Below are positions 4,291 through 64,000 of a stretch of 64,000 nucleotides of DNA, one piece after another (position 1 is the first letter of the stretch; each line of letters starts with the position of its first letter). A program made the position numbers and the translations under genes. The notes beneath the pieces were generated by a model. It had not been told where the DNA came from. It saw nothing but the letters and a program-made list of their open reading frames with translations, and made no database searches. Source of the stretch: Adineta vaga (lineage: Eukaryota; Animalia; Rotifera); assembly GCA_021613535.1 (NCBI GenBank), contig CP075497.1, forward strand, positions 9,238,001-9,302,000, given 5' to 3'.

Positions 4291-6288
4291 TAAAGATATT
4301 TAATTGGAATAAAAATGAAGTATTATTTAGAAAATAGGACGATGCGCTCAAAACAAAGCGCACGTAAGGAATAATCTGTAAGATAGAAATACCATGTGAA
4401 ATCGAACAAAACATTATGAGTCATTTAATGAAGAACATGAGGAGAAAAGAAAACAACAATATTGAAAGAAAAAGAAAAAAGAAATCGACTCAAATCATTT
4501 GGATTACCTCGATGAGAAAAGAAAAGAAATAAACATGGCTATTGAAGAAAAAGAAAGACATTCTCTCAGCTGATTATGAAAATGATGTATATAGGTTTTT
4601 TTCTTAAGAAATGAAATTGAAAATTAGTCTCGAAAAAGTTTAATTATAAGAAAACAACAATAAACAATATTATACAAATCACGTATCTCATTTACAAACA
4701 TCGAATAAATAGAAATAGAAAGAACATCCAGACAGCCATTCGAACCAGACGGAAGTCTCACTATGATGATTCATCGAAAGCATTAAGATAGGATAGGAGG
4801 ATGAATGAATGAGTGCATGTGTGTGTGTGTGTGTATGTATGTGTATATATTTATTGTTTACTATCAACTGGCGACATTTTAGTTTTCCTCGGAAAAATCA
4901 AGATGGCGTCACAAGAGTGACAGGAAATTCACCTCTATACATAAATCGATATAAAAATGGAAATAAAAAGTATATTGATGCATCATTTTCATCATTGTTT
5001 TATTGTAAGAAATAGCGATCAGTTCGATATGTCGCTTTTCTGTCAGAAAAAGAGAAATGATGCTAATACAATATGTTCCATAACTCGATCATAGATGATA
5101 ATTCAATCTCAATGGATTTAATAAGTTATAATAATCTAACAGAAAAGTATACTTCCTCGACATCACATGTACTTTCCGTGTGAACAATGCTTTGATAGAT
5201 ATTTATTTGTGTTTCAATACTTTTATAAACTTTGACGGAATACCAAAAATAGATCCTTCCTTGATGTATATCATCATATAAGATCTATGAGAAATGATTA
5301 GTGTGGAGTAATAAGTAAAAGTTTCGAGCACTTCTTTTAGAATATGATATGAGTATATTACATAGGGAAAAACTGTTCTCATTATCGAACATATCCAATA
5401 TCCTTTTTGTTGATATTATTATATTTAGCACACTGTATAAGCTTTGACATTACTCTGTCCCTTGTTTGTACTGCTATGCACGACGTCAACGTTTATTTGA
5501 CAGCATATAGGTTTTCAATTACTTCACAAATATTCGTCGTCTACTGACGAATACCCTTACTATTCTCGTCATGTATAGACATATCAAAGTTAGCCTTATG
5601 TACTGAGCAATAATGCAAGAAGAGAGAAATATGAAAACGAAAAAGTTTTCTAATTCTTTCGTTCGTCTTAATATTGTTTTCTCTACGTATATACATTGTC
5701 ATGACAAAATATTTATTCATCAATGGATACCGATTATCTTCGTTTATCTGTAAAAGTTTAAGTATATTTCGGTCAACAAGATTTTCAAAAAATGAACCTA
5801 CGCCAAAACAGTACGGCCGTAAACGACCGTGTTCAGAGAGATACGGACTCTATGATCTTTTCAACTTCTTTTTGAATTCAAAATGAAAAAAAAATGATAA
5901 TTCTCCCACAACCATAGGCATTTGGGGTCTAAAAGAAACAAATTTTTTTATTTAATTTAGACAGTCACTCGTATATGAAATTCTTCTTTAAGATTAATTA
6001 ATCGATTAGAAATTTCTTGTACAGACTAATCTGATGACGGTAATATATTTACATTGGAGTATTCAGCTTTATTCATCTATAGATAGTTTTATAATGAATT
6101 GAATAATTGGTTATTTAGAAGATTATATAAAAAATTCATAATTTATGTTATTATTTACTTGCATTTGAGAGATTTATTCTATTCCATTTTTATGAAGATG
6201 AGTATGTCTTTCGAGATAAAACATTTGTGCAATAAATCATACTTTAATAAATATAAAATGTTCAATTGATTTTCATTTTAACAATTAG

Positions 6289-6634
6289 ATTAAATAATCA
6301 TTTCAATACTGATCACTATAATTTAAATGATGAACAAAGTTTTGATTTTTAATCAAATCCAATTGATGAACCTGAACGTAATGAATATAATTTAGATGAA
6401 TCTCGATCTTTAAATGGAACCGACGAAAAATTTTTCGAAAAATATTCAACAGTAATAGAGAAATATTTAAATCGTGATCTTTCTTTTCGATGTATAGATA
6501 GTACATATGCGCATTGGGAGTAAGCTCCTATTTTCTCAAACATAATATTCAATTCTATAATTCGTTTATTAGAACGTGCTGCTAATACTCATATAAAGGA
6601 CGAATGTTGGGGTGCACTTTTTCTCGTTTATTCG
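6289..6634 (+). pseudogene. Decayed coding-like exon of unknown family
   Basis: Runs from a ttag acceptor to a GTGAG donor and reads LNNHFNTDHYNLNDEQSFDF*SNPIDEPERNEYNLDESRSLNGTDEKFFEKYSTVIEKYLNRDLSFRCIDSTYAHWE*APIFSNII...DECWGALFLVYS, with in-frame TAA at 6350 and 6521. Confidence 0.35.
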
Positions 6635-8119
6635 GTGAGTTATTTGTAAAATCTGTTCATTTTAATCTACATTAGTCGTAAGGAATACATCTTTTGGATT
6701 TAAAATTATAAGAGAGACAATTCTAACTATCTGAAAGATGATATTAAACTGTTAAGATACTGATTAGTCACTCAATTCAGAAACACTTCTCTTTCCGTAA
6801 ATTGATCTATTGAAATTTAGTTCCATTTCACTAATCCAGATTTATACAATGGAACATGTGATAAAATTTGTTTCGAATCAAATAATTCTTGTACACGAAG
6901 ATTTTCCATCATTATTTGAATTTTCTGCATCCTCTATTTTATGGAATGGAACAATATCAATTTCAACTTTCAATCTTCTTAGTTATGCAGTAGTGGAAAC
7001 CCAGAGAGAGAAAGATTCAACTGTCAAAAAATCGTGCAAAAATCTAAGAGTTCATTCTCATAGAAGATCCCATGATTACCTCTACTATCTAAATACAATG
7101 ACATATTTCATTCTTTCATTATCAATATTAAAAAAAACCATCACGAATCATGATTAGTGAGCTTAATTTCGTTTGATTTGTTTAATATCTCCATATAATT
7201 CTTCAGTTATTATTAAAAATGAAAACAATTCAATACATGTCATTTTATTCGAATATACAATAAAGAATTCCTAATACTGAGTTCTTCTAAGATAATTAAC
7301 ATATAATTAGAACCAGATTTGAATACAATTCGTAGAGTATCTAAAAAACATATTACAAAAGCTTATTCGAAGTCAAACAAGTTGTTGTAAATTCTCGAAA
7401 CAAAAGATTTACTTGTTGATTAATAGTGATTCCAAAATGTTCTTTATTATATAATATTGTTCGAAATAAAAAAGTTATTAAAGTATGTTAAGTCATGGTC
7501 ATATATGAACAAAAAGATTTTACTGGTTATATAAGTGCTAAACTATTAACAATATTCATCTATTTATTATGAATTTACTTAATTCGTACACAAACGGAGA
7601 GAAGAAAAAGAGATATGTACTATTTGTTACTATTGTTCTTAAAATTACAAAAAATAAAACATACGAGAATTAATAATAATAACAATTCCTTTTTTTTTTT
7701 GATAATTATATATTATGTTCTGAACACTAGACATACCATCAATGATGCATAATTTCTCACAAGAAGGCTTTTCAATATAAGATAAAATAGAAATGAGTAT
7801 AATTCAATTTGAAATATATGTAATAAAAAGCTTCTTTCCGGATGAAACCCACTTGATAGTATATGTATTCCCACGATGACGATAGGTGGCGGTAGGATAC
7901 AAAAAAAAAAGTTGTCTTGAAAACGTTTCTGAAAATGATGAATAAAATTTCTTAATTACAATTTAAATAAATTTCTAAAAACTAAAATAAAATATGAAAA
8001 TGGTAGTTTCCTATTGGTTCAATCATAGTGCTTGATATGTTTATTCATTGATCCTTTCTCCAGTCAGTTCTCCTCATCTGTTGTTGTCTTTTTTTCTCAC
8101 AACGAAAACAATCTAATTA

Positions 8120-56793: not shown

Positions 56794-57912
56794 GCTTGTT
56801 CGTAAGAAAAAATGATGGGAAGATAACGAAAAGAACATATTGCTTTTATACACATCATTAACTATCACAGCTCAATAAAGAACAAACGACAACAAAGAAG
56901 TAACCGTTACATGTTTAAATATAACAAAACCGTTACAAAAGATATATAGTCTAATTTTCGAATGCAACGGATAAGCAAATAACTTTATCCGCTTCCATAT
57001 AAGCAACAACGAATCATGTCAATGCTAAACTTGACTAGTCCAGATTGCTTATAATACCTGTACACCATGCTCGGTCAACTTTGTAAGAACAACGATTTCT
57101 TTTGCATTGTATCTGGACTAGTCCATTATGTTCTTCGCAATTTGTATACTATCTAGGAACTGCAATGGCAAAACAGTTCCATAAATTTCTTTCATGTTTA
57201 TTGATAATAAAATAAAAGGAGCTATATGCAAATCATTTGGATCATCACTTGTTTTTCCGTTATACAAAATTTTGCTACTAATATGTAAATATTTCGTTTC
57301 TAATTGATTGAATATTCTCATTTGAAATCAAAGACTAACTAGATTTTATTATCAGAAACAGTATAGAATTTTTCACATGTTCGTGAAAATGATATCGATC
57401 TCTATGAATTAGTTGAAAGCAAAAGATTGATTCAGTGCATATAGACATCGTCTTTTGTTTCTCTATATCGAAGGGCATTTAATATTGATCAGATTGAATG
57501 GTACATATGATCTTTCTCTCTCTCTCTCTTATTTCGAAATATAAAAAGTGCAATAAAACGATTTTCAACTCAAGTTAACATCAAAAGAACTATTCGATAT
57601 TATTTATTATCAGCAACTATATGTCTGAAGAGAAAATCTATCGTTGATATTCAACATCTGAATATGATTTTTAAAATTAATATATTTGCTATGTAAGAAA
57701 ACAGAAAGGTAAAAATGATATTTAATTCAAGTCCGCCTCTCCGCCAAATGATCTTGAAATTCAGCTTTGAATCGTTTCGACAACAAGTCGATTTTCAAGT
57801 CAAAGATTTTATTTCAAAATAAATATCCTACACTCAAGTTTTTTCGTCATCGAAATAAATGAAATCAGATTTTTGATCATTTGAAAATTTTCAAGAAAAG
57901 GATAATCATCTC

Positions 57913-58601
57913 ATGACTACGCTTCATAACTATACAACAAGACAGGCCGTAAATTTTTCATCAAATGTTTCAAATATTATTTTGAACAGAAGATTCTTAC
58001 TTTTAGGCATCAATTGGTCTTCAACCAGGTAATCTAATTGGTGAAGCACATTACATTACTGAGACTCAAATAACTCCACCAGTAAAACAACGAGTTCGAA
58101 GTAGAAAACTCCTAAGCGTAAGAATTCATATTTAATGAAAACAATCTTTCGATAAAAAATTTGTTTTATAATTAGACAAATATAAGCCGATGTCAATGTT
58201 GTTGTCCACCAATTGCTTCTCCTTTATGTCGTTCATGTTTATGTCCATGTTGGGCGTATTTACTTATTGGTCTTCTTCTCACTTTACTTCTAGCAGCGTT
58301 AGCTGTTGAAATTGGTTTTTTGACTAGTAAGATCTTTCAATCGATTTTTTTATTCTTCAAATTCATTTATTTTACAGGAGAGAAAATCCTTTATCGAAGA
58401 ACAGTTTGTAACAATGTGTATAATTCAAGTTATGTTTTGGATCCTGCTAATAATGGCACATGGGTTGTCTCTACTTCAACAAGTGAACCATGTGGAGGTC
58501 TACCTGATGGAACAATAATTGGATCGGGATCATCTATTTGGTCATCTTTTACATATATATTTCTTCTCATCAACATTATCATCTACCTTATTAACTATTA
58601 G
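57913..58601 (+). CDS. Small membrane protein: Cys-rich juxtamembrane N-terminus, TM helix, short ectodomain, hydrophobic C-terminus; 4 exons
   Basis: Spliced: MTTLHNYTTRQA...RCQCCCPPIASPLCRSCLCPCWAYLLIGLLLTLLLAALAVEIGFLT-REKILYRRTVCNNVYNSS...EPCGGLPDGTIIGSGSSIWSSFTYIFLLINIIIYLINY*. Confidence 0.7.
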
Positions 58602-58837
58602 AGGAACTTCTTTAGAACTAAATAATATGAACATTGATAAACCTTATTCTAATTTTCTTTTCTTTTTTCATCTATAAATAAAAAAAATTGATTCATAAGA
58701 GAGGGCGCTAGTTTAATGATAAAATATTAAAAAATGATTTCAAATTTCTATCAGAAACTACGAAACTTATCATCTGAAACTTTCATATGCGTTCAAAAGT
58801 TACTTTTACGACATAGTAAAATCTTAATGATTTGTTG

Positions 58838-58850
58838 GTTGCTTAGCAAC
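58838..58850. promoter_or_regulatory. RFX X-box (perfect palindrome GTTGCT-T-AGCAAC)
   Basis: Matches the RFX consensus GTTRCY-N(0-3)-RGYAAC, 78 nt upstream of the ATG of a ciliary gene. Confidence 0.85.
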
Positions 58851-58927
58851 AAGAAACAAAATTTTTCTACGCATAATGTCGTTCCGTTGTTGTTGTATTT
58901 ATCCATTCCTATAACAATTCTATTAAC

Positions 58928-59551
58928 ATGCTTCAAACAAGCGCACTTCGTCGACCATTTGGTCATCAAACGTTAATTTATAATTGGGAAGAAGATCGCG
59001 CTGATATTAAAAATCAACGAGTTCAAAAACCGCTTCCTTCTCAGGTTCATTTTTTTCTGATTTTTCAACAAATTGATATTTATCGTTTTCAAATTCTAGC
59101 ATGATCATTATTTTAATACCACATATGAAAGTTCATTTGGTACCATAAGAGGTGGACCACCTCGACCTGAAGTTCGTCATCTTGAACGTAAGTTGCATCT
59201 CTACATATTCTCAACAAAAGAAAATTTTAATTCTTCTTAGTTCCTCGTGCATTTGCTTTTCCCGGTCATCAACCTGAATTTGATTTTCCTGAAATGAAAG
59301 CATCAGTTAACACCTATTTAAGTGAATATCGAGCTGCTTATTGTCGTAGTTGTAATCGTGTATTAGAACCTGATGATCCTGCTTGGTCATCATCGACAAA
59401 AGTTTGTTTACATTGTAAAGATCGTACATATACTATTGATCCTAAACCTGAACCATATACAGTTACTGTTGATTATCCACAGAATCCTGCAGCAAAAGAT
59501 CGTTGTCTTGCCTGCTTAGAAATTAATACTGGTGTTAAAATAATAAAATAA
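58928..59551 (+). CDS. CFAP68: Cilia- and flagella-associated protein 68 (C11orf1 family) with a Cys-rich C-terminal extension; 3 exons
   Basis: TLIYNWEEDR, KPLPSQ|HDHYFNTTYESSF and AFPGHQPEFD match the C11orf1 motifs PLPSQFGHYFETTY and FPGHQPELD. Confidence 0.8.
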
Positions 59552-59624
59552 ACAGCGAACGAAAGATTTTATTTTTTTGATACTTTATTTTGAAATAAAC
59601 TTCACATTATATTTCAGATTAATA

Positions 59625-61471
59625 ATGACTATGGAAGCAACTGAACAAGATCTTCTCGCAACACAGAAAGCCCTCGAAGAAGAGGTGCAAAACAAGGTGA
59701 AACAAGCAGTTGTAGATAATTTTCTTCGAGTAAGTTTTGTTTTATTTCATTTCAATAAATAACAATTGCAAATTTCTTTCAAGGAAAAATTAAGTCGAGA
59801 AGAAAAATTTACAGAACGAAATTCCTATAAATTAAATACGCAATGGTTGCCTGTAATGCGAGCAGCCAAATCGAAAGAATTAAAGAAAGAAATTGAAATT
59901 TTATCTCAAACATTTGGTCGAATTATTGATCGAAAAGATACGGTAATCAAATCATCCTTAGTCGATATTGATGAAGCTGAAGAACAATATAGTATGGCTT
60001 TAAGAAGTTTCTTGGAAGCAATTGAAAAGATGATCAGTAAGAGAAAAATATCTTTCAAAAAAAAAGAAACTCTTTGATTAATTGATTATTATTAGGAATG
60101 CATACATTAACAATTGATAAATTACTCGATCAATATGAAAAAGATGCTGAACAAGTTAAATTTGAATTTCTTGATGAACGTGAAAAGATTATTCGAGATC
60201 ATACAGCATCGAAAACTGAATTGCAAGATATTATTTATAATATGGAGAAAACCTTTCTTGATACAGAAACAACAGCTGAACAAAATTTTCAAGCTAATAT
60301 GGAAGAATTACGTGATCGAGTTAGTAGACGAGAAGATTTTTATATAGAGAACTATTCTCTCGGTTTGTTTTAGTATCGAGAAGATATGCAATACTATCAA
60401 GGAGAAGTTGAAAAACGTATGGAAAAGTTACAAAATGAAATGGCATCAATAACAGCAACATATAAGGAACGAACGAGAGATAGTAAAGCACAATATCAAG
60501 AATATAAAATGAGGGATGAAAAAAATTCGAAAGAAATTCGTGAAGCAACTATTTACATTAATCGAATGATGGTAAATCAAAACTTTCTTTTCATCATCAT
60601 CAATCAATTAATACAATTGTATTTTTCAGGAAAAAATCAATAATATCAAAGCACAAATTGCATCATTAGAAGCTAATCATCAAGGACGCATGCAAAAAGT
60701 TCAACAGGTAAGTTTCATTTCAGAAAAAGACATCAGATTAGAATTGTTATTCTAGGAAAAAGATAGTATGAAACAATATCTTCGTGATTTAAAATTTCAA
60801 TTATCAGAAATGCAAGAAGAATTACATCGACGATTAGTTAAACTTGCATTAACATGTGATGGAACACAAAAACAATTGGAAAAACGTGTTAAAACTGCGG
60901 AAACAATTCTCACTTTATCTGAAATGTGTCGTAAATTAGAAGCTGAAGAAGAAAAAATTCTTCCATTTTATACATCAACATTAACTGAAGAAGAACGAGC
61001 GGAAGTTGATGCTGCTTTCTATGAACAACCATTTGAAGATTTAGCAAAAGTATGATGTTCTTGACTTATGTTTCTTTTTTTTTGTGAATATGTCTTTTCT
61101 AATTGAAGGATATGTATACATATGATTTATTAGAAACGTTTTGGAAACGATTTGGTAAAGTATCGTTAGATAAATTAGCTTTGGAAAAAGAACGAAGTAT
61201 TTTACAATCAGAAAATATGCAACTAAAAATGTTATTGAAACAATATCTTGATGGAATATCAGTCAATGATGAAATTATGAGTCAAACTAATCCATTGATG
61301 ATTTATTCATCAAGACGTGTACTTGAGTATGTAGTTTCAAAACGATTTCATTGATATAGTTCTTCGTTTTCTTTTCTTTTCAATAGAAGTCAATCTGCTA
61401 CAAAACAGTTACCAACTTCTCGACCGATAAAAGTTGTCATTGAAGCTCAACATGTGAAAAGCGCCTTTTGA
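59625..61471 (+). CDS. CCDC65: Dynein regulatory complex subunit 2 (CCDC65/DRC2); multi-exon
   Basis: FLREKLSREEK...KLNTQW...KELKKEIEILSQTFGRIIDRKDTVIKS...EAEEQY, AETILTLSEMCRKLEAEEEKILPFY, FWKRFGKVSLDKLAL...ENMQLKMLLKQYLDGISVNDEIM...NPL. Confidence 0.92.
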
Positions 61472-61635
61472 TATGTTTATTTGCTCTTGTATACGTCTTT
61501 TGTTTTCCATAATATATTTTGTGTAGTCTGTCTTTTCATATTTTCTACTATAAACATCAAATAATTGATATATTGAATTTTTTTTAAAAACTTATTTATT
61601 GAAACAAAAGAAAATATAAATGAGTGAGATTTGAT

Positions 61636-64000
61636 TTAAACTTTCTCTTGCAAATGTTTTCTATAATCTTTATAAAATCGAATTTCATCATGATTTTCAT
61701 CTCGTGTTAAAAGTAAACGTTGAATGGCTTTGTCCATGGTTTCTATCGCTTCATTCAATCGTCCTAAACCTTCTAAAACTGTTGACATATTATAATAAGT
61801 TACTGCAATAGTTGGATGATCTTCTACATGTAATTTAAGTTCAATCGCTAGACATTTTTGATAATTTTCTAATGCTTTACTATATTGATTTATATGAGAT
61901 TGAGCTCCAGCAAGATTATGATATTTCGTAGAAAGTTCGAGATCATCTTCATATGGATACAATCGTTGTTGGATTTGTAAATCACGTTGAAGATAAGGTA
62001 TTGCTTCTTCATATTTACCTTGTTTTATAAGTACAGATGCAATATTACCAGCATAAGCAGCAATAGAATCTAAATCCGGACTAGATGATAAGATCTGTAT
62101 ATCATATGCTTTTCGATGAAAATAAAGTGCTTTTGCATCAAGCTCTTGTTTATGATAAATACTTCCCATATTATTATATGTTGGAGTTAATTTTATGTCA
62201 TCGGATGGTAAGACACGTAAATAGATTTGTAGAGATTTTTGTAACTGTTTAAGTGCACGATCGTATTGTTTTTGTTCATAATAATAACAGCAAAGCATAT
62301 GAAATAAACCAGCGACTATTAAATTGGCTGTTTGATCTTGTTCAGTTAATGGATGATTGATTAAAATATTGCAAAAATATTCGATGTTTGGAAAATCTTT
62401 CATTTGTTTCATTAATTTAGCTATTCGAAGTAAGGGAAAAGATTGATGAATAATTTCTTGAAAATTTTTGTTAATTTGTTGGACAATATTTAATGTATCA
62501 TTGTTAATTGATAGTTTTATTATAGGCATATTTTTATCTTTACCTTTAATATTTGAAATTTGAAATACACTGGCGGCTGAAAGAAGTAATTCGTCAGTAT
62601 TCGGTTCGATTTCCATCATTAATATCGGTACTTCTATTTCCATTTGAAATAGAACAAATATAACATCCAAATTTATACATGATAGTTCCGTTTTCTGTTG
62701 TTGTGATGTAACTTTTGTTCTTTGTGTCAGAAGGAATGAATTAAAAGTAATGTAACCACCTTTATTCTTCGAGAATGAATCAAACATCGTTTTAGAAACA
62801 TATTGAGTTCGATAAACAGTTATTGGTATTGATGAATTATTTAATTTCAACTGTCGTTGAAGATGTTGAACGAAAAAACGAAGTTTATATAGAATATATG
62901 GATCTGGTAAACGGAATGCTCGTGTTAACATTTTGAATAAAAAAATTTCTTGACGTATATACCATTTAACAGCTTCTTCGGGTCGGAAATAACGTTCAAA
63001 TTCATTAATAAATTTCAATTGTATTTCATTTTCAGCATATTGTTGACGACAAAAATCTAGCATTTCCTTTTGTAAATCAGTTTGTTCATCATTTTCCAAG
63101 ATAATATCTTTTAATATTTGCAAATATACAAAACTATTATTACTCGTATCATTCGCAGAGATTGATAAAATCATCATGAAATCTGATGTTAATGATATTA
63201 GATCTTTTTCTAATCGATGACATACTCTACTTAAACTAGTATAAATACCTTGAATTTTAATAGAATCATATGATTCTTCGTTATTATGATCAACGACATA
63301 GATATAACGAACTTGTGATAAATCATGAATATATTTTTGTAAATTTTCTAGATTTGTTTTCGATAAAATCATAATAATTTGTTCTTGAATGGTATCAGTA
63401 ACATATTCGATACAGACTTTGTCATTAATATCATTTATTATTAGACCAGAATTAATAAGTCCACGTAATCTTATCTTATCATTGTCGGACATTTCAATAG
63501 TACCATCCAAAATATAGATAAAACTTTCTACATTCTTCTCGATAGGTGATGAATTACTCGAGAGATAATTGTGAGAGTGATCGGACTTCTGAAACGCAAG
63601 AGAAGACTGTGAATATATGAATAGAAATTATTTGAGAGAAAAGAGCAAACCTTCAGGAGGATTCGATGTGAATTTTGCATGAGGATTTTCTACATTAGCT
63701 GAACTATTACTATCCATTGATTTATGAGTATTCAATGAACTGCTGTCTGTTTGATTCACCCAATCTTGAACGTTTTGACTTTGTTCAGAACATGTTAATG
63801 ATGTTCGCTCTTCTATAAAAGAAAATTCTATCAAAGAACTTTTATAAATTTTCTATTTTACGAATGGATTCTGTATTTCGTGTAATAGTGTTATCATCGC
63901 TAATTGATGAACGAATCGAATCTGTTGGTGTTTGCCGTGTAGATAGTTTTGTATCATCGTTTAGTGCCAATTCCAACAGACGAAAATCAACAGATTGTGA
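61636..64000 (-). CDS. TPR-repeat protein with a degenerate ART-like domain (bdelloid-expanded type); 5' end lies beyond the window
   Basis: CRQQYAENEIQLKFINEFERYF.PEEAVKWY, ITVYRTQ, YITFNSFLLT, DELL...SVFQI, then about 5 TPRs (YNNMGSIY, AGNIASVLIKQGKYEEAIPYLQRDL, HPTIAVTYYNMSTVLEGLGRLNEA). Upstream Ser-rich exons run to the window end. Confidence 0.85.

Follow-up and report, generated by a model that had tools for sequence, protein, structure and literature searches.

A candidate two-gene ciliary operon, CFAP68–DRC2, behind a conserved X-box in bdelloid rotifers

Operons whose transcripts are resolved by a trans-spliced leader (SL) have been described from nematodes, tunicates, flatworms, and chaetognaths, and most of the animal operons known consist of housekeeping genes with no relation to one another. 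In the SL2 operons of Caenorhabditis elegans, neighboring genes on one strand are separated by about 100 nt, a promoter is found upstream of the first gene only, and the spacer contains a poly(A) signal, a U-rich tract, and a splice acceptor just ahead of the downstream start. Rotifers also trans-splice: their 23-nt leader sequence has been described, is the only one known, and has no SL2-like counterpart dedicated to operons (PMC3795323), and it is found on more than half of bdelloid mRNAs (PMC1925144). Rotifers have been listed in passing among lineages with trans-splicing and operonic transcription (PMC12460157), no operons or polycistronic mRNAs were reported for them as of PMC7986045, and our literature search on operons or polycistronic transcripts in rotifers or Adineta yielded no report of them either. 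Here we describe a pair of neighboring genes, CFAP68 and DRC2 (CCDC65), in a 64-kb stretch of the genome of the bdelloid rotifer Adineta vaga (C6:9238001-9302000, part of a 100.8-Mb assembly in six contigs). We call this stretch the window, and coordinates are positions within it. With a probability that we put at roughly 0.55, the two genes form a single motile-cilium transcription unit, which is co-transcribed from one promoter containing an X-box (the binding motif of RFX factors), trans-spliced, and conserved across bdelloids.

In the scheme that we propose, an RFX-type factor would bind the X-box at -90 and drive transcription from a capped site in the stretch that separates this motif from the CFAP68 ATG. 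The polymerase would then run on through the 73-nt spacer, from which RNA is seen in one run, into DRC2, yielding a putative single two-gene molecule. The CFAP68 message would be ended by means of the AATAAA at its stop codon and/or the one in the middle of the spacer; both signals are present, and contig ends bound the cleavage to about 59563-59640. Finally, the 23-nt leader would be trans-spliced to the AG at 59616-59617 to form the DRC2 5' end, and a boundary of RNA contigs falls at exactly this place.

The CFAP68–DRC2 pair and its spacer

CFAP68 (ATG at 58928, TAA at 59549-59551) and DRC2 lie on the same strand with 73 nt between stop and ATG, a gap of the short kind from which operons are called (Table 1). 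This locus was brought to our attention by a sequence-only reading, which had placed the CFAP68 stop at 59551, the CCDC65 ATG at 59625, AATAAA hexamers at 59542, 59547, and 59594, and a tttcAG acceptor ending at 59616-59617, and we recovered all of these positions on re-reading. The T-rich tract that it put at ~59567-59591 is present at 59566-59591; the two GT dinucleotides that it put at 59533 and 59535 also exist, and their positions are really 59532-59533 and 59534-59535. A second DRC2 ATG at 59631 aligns with the start in other lineages, and counted from there the spacer is 79 nt.

Table 1. Features of the CFAP68–DRC2 locus, gap lengths in bdelloids, and the CFAP20 genes used for comparison
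Feature	Position	Strand	Remarks
X-box, 13-nt palindrome GTTGCTTAGCAAC	58838-58850	.	90 nt 5' of CFAP68 ATG
Core promoter and 5' untranslated region, X-box to ATG	58851-58927	+	Conserved, alignment mean column identity 65%
CFAP68	58928-59551	+	3 exons (58928-59044, 59100-59187, 59241-59551), 171 codons
Two overlapping AATAAA (59542, 59547) on CFAP68 stop	59542-59552	+	Proximal poly(A) signal
Spacer, T-rich	59552-59624	+	73 nt; RNA coverage in one run
Mid-spacer AATAAA	59594-59599	+	Distal poly(A) signal, 18 nt 5' of acceptor AG
3' splice acceptor tatttcAG	59610-59617	+	Proposed spliced-leader acceptor; mRNA body would begin at 59618
DRC2/CCDC65	59625-61471	+	8 exons, 484 codons
CFAP68–DRC2 gap, A. 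vaga			73 nt
CFAP68–DRC2 gap, A. ricciae			78 nt
CFAP68–DRC2 gap, A. steineri			95 nt
CFAP68–DRC2 gap, Rotaria sp. Silwood1			93 nt
CFAP68–DRC2 gap, R. socialis			124 nt
CFAP68–DRC2 gap, six further Logan or metagenome contigs			73-116 nt
CFAP20 paralogue (L056)	C1:7924554-7927766		X-box 90-95 nt upstream
CFAP20 paralogue (L059)	C4:4759398-4762595		X-box 90-95 nt upstream

Protein comparisons were made with single exon translations or with database orthologues rather than with a joined spliced protein model. Exons 1 and 3 of CFAP68 match the Pfam family CFAP68 (PF06608) with 20.5 and 16.1 bits, each under the 24-bit cut-off when taken alone, and the domain is present in full-length CFAP68 orthologues. 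The full-length orthologue from A. ricciae (P0001), the species of the nearest named proteins (93% identity across CFAP68 exon 3), matches CFAP68 chains in the PDB (8snb, 7ung, 8iyj, and 8otz; 1.7e-19 to 3.3e-14), which come from axoneme structures of sea urchin, human, mouse, and bovine. For DRC2, exon 2 matches Pfam NYD-SP28 (2.3e-21) and a later exon matches NYD-SP28_assoc (3.4e-7). All six of its PDB matches are DRC2-type proteins, five of them named dynein regulatory complex subunit 2 and one a Tetrahymena 'coiled-coil protein, putative'. The best of these, human chain 8j07_2 (1.4e-20), aligns from chain residue 46, which, with a first exon of 35 codons, fits a complete DRC2 N terminus. 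The identities of both genes and the N-terminal completeness of CCDC65 had been proposed from the DNA letters; these matches bear out the identities and agree with the completeness. Gene models drawn from RNA contigs contain two CFAP68 and seven DRC2 introns, all spliced and all GT..AG. We looked in the genome for a second copy (ohnologue) of either gene and found none; both are single-copy in this assembly.

The CFAP68 chains in the PDB align to residues 9-103 only. Bdelloid CFAP68 continues into a C-terminal extension (59330-59548, in exon 3) that contains three conserved CxxC pairs and many invariant columns, and that gives a weak match to a double zinc ribbon (E 0.31).

We compared loci holding the pair from Adineta, Rotaria, and further bdelloid contigs; 11 of them contain the complete spacer, 10 forming the main spacer set and the other being contig L061. 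In all 11, DRC2 is the next gene after CFAP68 and has the same orientation, with gaps of 73-124 nt, and a 12th contig, taken from gene coordinates only, has a gap of 78 nt. A comparison of gene order and spacer length in other bdelloids had been suggested as a check on the operon, and by that comparison the order is kept. A word search for the pair in monogononts or other non-bdelloids gave bdelloids only. The spacers combine a T-rich tract and a pyrimidine-rich AG with an AATAAA, which is placed at the stop codon or in the middle of the spacer or in both positions. The hexamer is at or beside the CFAP68 stop in seven of 10 spacers, including those of the three named Adineta. Mid-spacer, GAAATAAA or TAAATAAA is found in eight of the 10 complete spacers and also in L061 and L020, the exceptions being Rotaria sp. 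Silwood1, which has AATAAG, and L025, which has none. The acceptor that had been noted ahead of the DRC2 start is kept throughout: a pyrimidine-rich AG followed by AT (YAG, then AT) lies 4-26 nt ahead of the DRC2 ATG in 11 of 11 complete spacers. Beyond the poly(A) hexamer and this acceptor, the alignment of the spacers (mean identity 50%) contains no conserved block.

The genome also encodes the leader that the proposed reaction would use, as the sequence-only reading had expected of a bdelloid. We found 42 SL RNA genes, in which GCTTATTACAACTTACCAAGAG (ending in CCAAGAG) is followed by GT, versus 0 in a reversed control, and the leader exon ends in AG (...ACCAAGAG).

The X-box upstream of CFAP68

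The palindrome GTTGCTTAGCAAC is the sole X-box match in the window, where chance would give 0.24 matches to the relaxed consensus and 0.01 to the palindrome, and the exact palindrome occurs at nine sites in the 100.8-Mb genome versus one for the reversed control. In an alignment of nine bdelloid lineages, no other block upstream of the CFAP68 ATG is as well conserved, and GTT.C...G..AC is invariant; an X-box is present between -75 and -99 in each of the 16 bdelloid CFAP68 loci examined. The A. vaga site had earlier been described as a perfect X-box. The palindrome is indeed perfect and fits the Drosophila consensus GYTRYYN(1-3)RRHRAC in full, but it differs at a single base from the human RFX1 consensus GTNRCCN(0-3)RGYAAC, having T instead of C at position 6 (both consensuses from PMC3414849). 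Its place, near upstream of a cilium gene and conserved in the promoters of orthologues, is the one that functional X-boxes occupy, and we regard it as a real promoter element. Two genomic loci encode an RFX_DNA_binding domain, and RFX would be the predicted ligand of this site. No acceptor comparable to that of DRC2 precedes the CFAP68 ATG: on reading 58851-58927 we found no pyrimidine-rich AG acceptor, and the CFAP68 mRNA therefore probably begins at its cap.

Other axonemal genes of this genome offer a comparison. Both CFAP20 paralogues have a zero-mismatch X-box (of the GTTTCC..GTGAC type) at -90 and -95 from the first coding match, against a background of 0.23 sites/kb, and the three RIB43A genes have no canonical X-box within 1 kb. 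For this reason we rejected the notion that every axonemal gene except DRC2 has an X-box of its own. The two CFAP20 paralogues also share a CTATGACG block about 15 nt downstream of the X-box, and the Rotaria and L019 CFAP68 promoters have TATGACATC at the matching place; this block may be a second ciliary promoter motif.

The other eight exact copies of the palindrome (GTTGCTWAGCAAC; L036-L043) have a mixed gene context. Genes beside them include CCDC92-domain, RIIa-domain, and LRR_9 genes, from families linked to centrioles or flagella, as well as BTB and BAT2_N genes, and one copy sits in a coding exon. As support for a ciliary role, this context is suggestive only.

RNA across the spacer and the weighing of rival readings

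For RNA evidence we used Logan contigs from four runs (X1, X5, X15, and X18) belonging to four studies, mapped on 57800-62000. Their introns are spliced, and the contigs therefore represent RNA. In X1, a single 1950-nt contig extends from 58973 to 61422 and is unbroken over 59241-59729, from CFAP68 exon 3 across the spacer through DRC2 exon 1. The upstream intergenic sequence at 58658-58927 has a depth of 0 in all four runs, indicating that the X1 coverage of the spacer comes from RNA rather than from contaminating DNA. Contig depths of CFAP68 and DRC2, which are poor measures of abundance, are alike in three runs (21.7/15.4, 23.8/21.5, and 57/50.8). Additional contigs were sought by CFAP68 and DRC2 protein look-ups, from which records of the window's own genome were apparently left out; all Logan, ENA, and JGI contigs found in this way were genomic, with introns retained or read through. 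A search of JGI metagenome contigs for the leader end joined to the conserved DRC2 start pattern found nothing.

The DRC2 contigs of X15 and X18 begin exactly at 59616. In X18, the contig has 1528 letters, of which 1521 are placed, leaving seven extra non-genomic letters ahead of 59616, and these favor a junction at that position. Because the leader (...GAG) and the genome (...CAG) share AG only, a word-graph assembly should break at 59616: where both spliced and unspliced forms are present, as in X15 and X1, the leader branch would be dropped as a tip, and where the spliced form is present alone, as in X18, a few leader letters would be kept. We consider trans-splicing at 59618 to be quite probable. 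The same seven letters could instead end any upstream exon, untranslated or belonging to CFAP68, if the 59617 acceptor were used in cis; the two genes would then share exons and would not be an operon. The sequence-only reading had named such cis-splicing as an observation that would count against it. No cis joint into 59618 was present in the four runs, in which all nine real introns were seen, and the sole nearby GT donors (59532 and 59534) were unused, making this explanation very improbable.

A contig start at 59616 would also be produced if DRC2 were not trans-spliced at all but had a capped start at about this position, the acceptor being a look-alike. TCAGATT at 59613-59619 fits the initiator consensus YYANWYY, its A falling on 59616, the position at which the X15 and X18 contigs start, and the AAATAAA upstream could act as a TATA-like element. 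In each of the 11 complete spacers the AG is followed by AT, an invariance that a splice acceptor does not require. Set against these points are the seven non-genomic letters in X18 and the passage of the X1 contig through the site. It is also rare for RNA-seq contigs from two separate studies both to extend precisely to a genuine capped end. In addition, the initiator fit fails in Rotaria sp. Silwood1 and is six of seven in five lineages, whereas the pyrimidine tract and AG are kept in all, and the distance from hexamer to AG (13-45 nt) is too variable for a TATA box. We judge a plain capped start to be improbable.

Two contig ends besides 59616 recur between runs. The CFAP68 contigs of X5 and X15 end at 59562, with no poly(A) tail seen, and those of three runs start at 58973, 45 nt past the ATG; 58787-58972 is covered by none of the runs, and position 58972 is a synonymous third base. 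Between 59144 and 61525, contigs from the four runs carry 14 single-base differences in mosaic combinations, the pattern to be expected where two alleles are expressed and an assembly retains only one of them per site. The 58973 starts are likely to reflect a heterozygous site near the transcript end combined with tip removal. We considered and rejected 58973 and 59562 as the exact transcription start and poly(A) site, since heterozygous sites near transcript ends explain them better.

The main rival to a shared promoter, which we consider unlikely although well ahead of the two explanations above, is that CFAP68 and DRC2 are separate units. DRC2 would have an unrecognized promoter, located either within the spacer or toward the 3' end of CFAP68, and its short outron, overlapping the CFAP68 3' untranslated region, would then be removed by trans-splicing. 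Trans-splicing of the leader is common on single bdelloid genes (PMC1925144), and the X1 contig would be satisfied by overlapping RNAs. Nevertheless, 73 nt leave little room for a promoter beside the poly(A) signal, pyrimidine tract, and acceptor, and the spacer has no conserved block other than the hexamer and acceptor. The 787 nt that separate the -90 site from the DRC2 ATG contain no X-box, even with one mismatch allowed, and we found no X-box of its own for DRC2 in any lineage examined. Finally, the last CFAP68 exon has a level profile of synonymous conservation (0.60-0.76 overall, 0.62-0.65 at the 3' end), without a rise where an embedded promoter might lie, and no embedded conserved promoter is therefore visible. 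The missing X-box, conserved block, and synonymous rise are absences and not proof of one promoter.

Several observations weigh against a shared, trans-spliced transcript. The spacer is bridged in one of the four runs and 59563-59615 is bare in the other three, and the two-gene contig needs only overlapping RNAs, which is no proof of one molecule. The four runs gave no loose contig ends; leader letters were not seen, and the seven letters in X18 are known by length arithmetic alone. The shared start of the CFAP68 contigs at 58973 is not a trans-splice site; identical contig ends may thus arise without splicing, and the 59616 starts weigh correspondingly less. A plain transcription start at the initiator-like A, with AAATAAA 17-23 nt upstream, would give the same DRC2 contig starts. 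The lack of an X-box at DRC2 is no proof that it depends on the CFAP68 promoter, because the three RIB43A genes lack one too. Lastly, the whole ~8-kb neighborhood is collinear between Adineta and Rotaria, and its other gaps are short and stable as well (~325 nt upstream, and 146-176 nt downstream between convergent stops), such that adjacency and conserved spacing alone are weak evidence for this pair.

Taking both sides together, we retain the single transcription unit as our favored reading. As regards the trans-spliced dicistronic unit put forward by the sequence-only reading, the conserved acceptor, the contig boundary at 59616, and spacer RNA in one run agree with it; the leader letters were not seen. 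The broader proposition, which we hold tentatively and at somewhat less than even odds, is that bdelloids have true spliced-leader operons, and that this one is a cell-type-specific, functionally coherent module, expressed as one RFX-driven transcript and conserved across bdelloid families.

Neighborhood of the pair and comparison with known systems

The gene order around the pair is the same in Adineta and Rotaria: an RRM gene, a gene of 170-173 residues, CFAP68, DRC2, and a convergent TPR gene. The second of these (57948-58657, + strand; 170-173 residues in relatives) has no Pfam family. It stops about 270 nt 5' of the CFAP68 ATG, its place is conserved in Adineta and Rotaria, its contig depth is below that of the ciliary pair, and no contig joins it to CFAP68. 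About 20 nt past its AATAAA, and 138 nt ahead of the X-box, lies a GC-rich motif, AGAGGGCGCTAG (58700-58711), with one occurrence in the window versus 0.02 expected and 13 in the genome versus 0 for the control. A. ricciae, A. steineri, both Rotaria, and L021 have a close variant at the corresponding position. The motif resembles what we take to be a CTCF-type core, and this likeness, with its place between same-strand genes, suggests a boundary or promoter element. The convergent TPR gene 3' of DRC2 has DUF4590 in Adineta and Rotaria; on contig L025, its counterpart (5721-7261, - strand, corresponding to window 61636-63510) has ART/ADPrib_exo_Tox (ADP-ribosyltransferase) matches ahead of the TPRs.

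If the favored reading is true, a rotifer operon would add a phylum to those with SL-resolved operons, and it would be of an unusual kind, since both products build the motile axoneme and both genes would stand behind a ciliary X-box. A microtubule inner protein and a subunit of the dynein regulatory complex would be made from one transcript, meaning that animal operons are not only for housekeeping or germline genes and can serve the stoichiometric co-expression of parts of one organelle. What this locus adds is its functional coherence together with a conserved promoter element. It would also be a compact test bed, in which one short promoter and a 73-nt spacer could be used to study co-regulation and the coupling of poly(A) choice to trans-splicing.

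Among known systems, the layout most resembles that of the C. elegans SL2 operons in its same-strand genes, close spacing, poly(A) signal, U-rich spacer, and acceptor just ahead of the downstream start, and we propose that the promoter is likewise upstream of the first gene only. If the proximal signal at the CFAP68 stop is used, about 50 nt would separate cleavage from the acceptor, as in nematodes. Nematode operons favor genes with housekeeping or germline roles and contain few cell-type-specific ones; in the rotifer pair, by contrast, both genes are axonemal and lie behind a cell-type-specific X-box. Nematodes also have SL2, whereas rotifers have a single known leader (PMC3795323), and leader type therefore cannot mark operon genes in rotifers. 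If the mid-spacer AATAAA at 59594 is used instead, cleavage would fall at or beside the AG 18 nt downstream, a layout like that of the tunicate (Ciona, Oikopleura) and C. elegans SL1-type operons that have no intercistronic region, with the qualification that contig ends bound cleavage here to about 59563-59640 only.

The promoter resembles those bound by C. elegans DAF-19, Drosophila Rfx, and vertebrate RFX2/3 in having one palindromic X-box within about 100 nt of the ATG of a cilium gene, conserved in orthologues. Unlike the usual 14-mer, this predicted site has its half-sites 1 nt rather than 2 nt apart and a T rather than C as the sixth base, and the conserved A-rich block just past it does not fit the Fox motif RYMAAYA. 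Closer to rotifers, the chaetognaths are gnathiferan relatives with widespread SL trans-splicing, and in Paraspadella gotoi operons have been called from gaps of <250 bp together with leader reads (PMC12460157). Chaetognath operon genes are biased toward housekeeping functions and few are finely regulated, whereas CFAP68–DRC2 would represent a cell-type-specific module.

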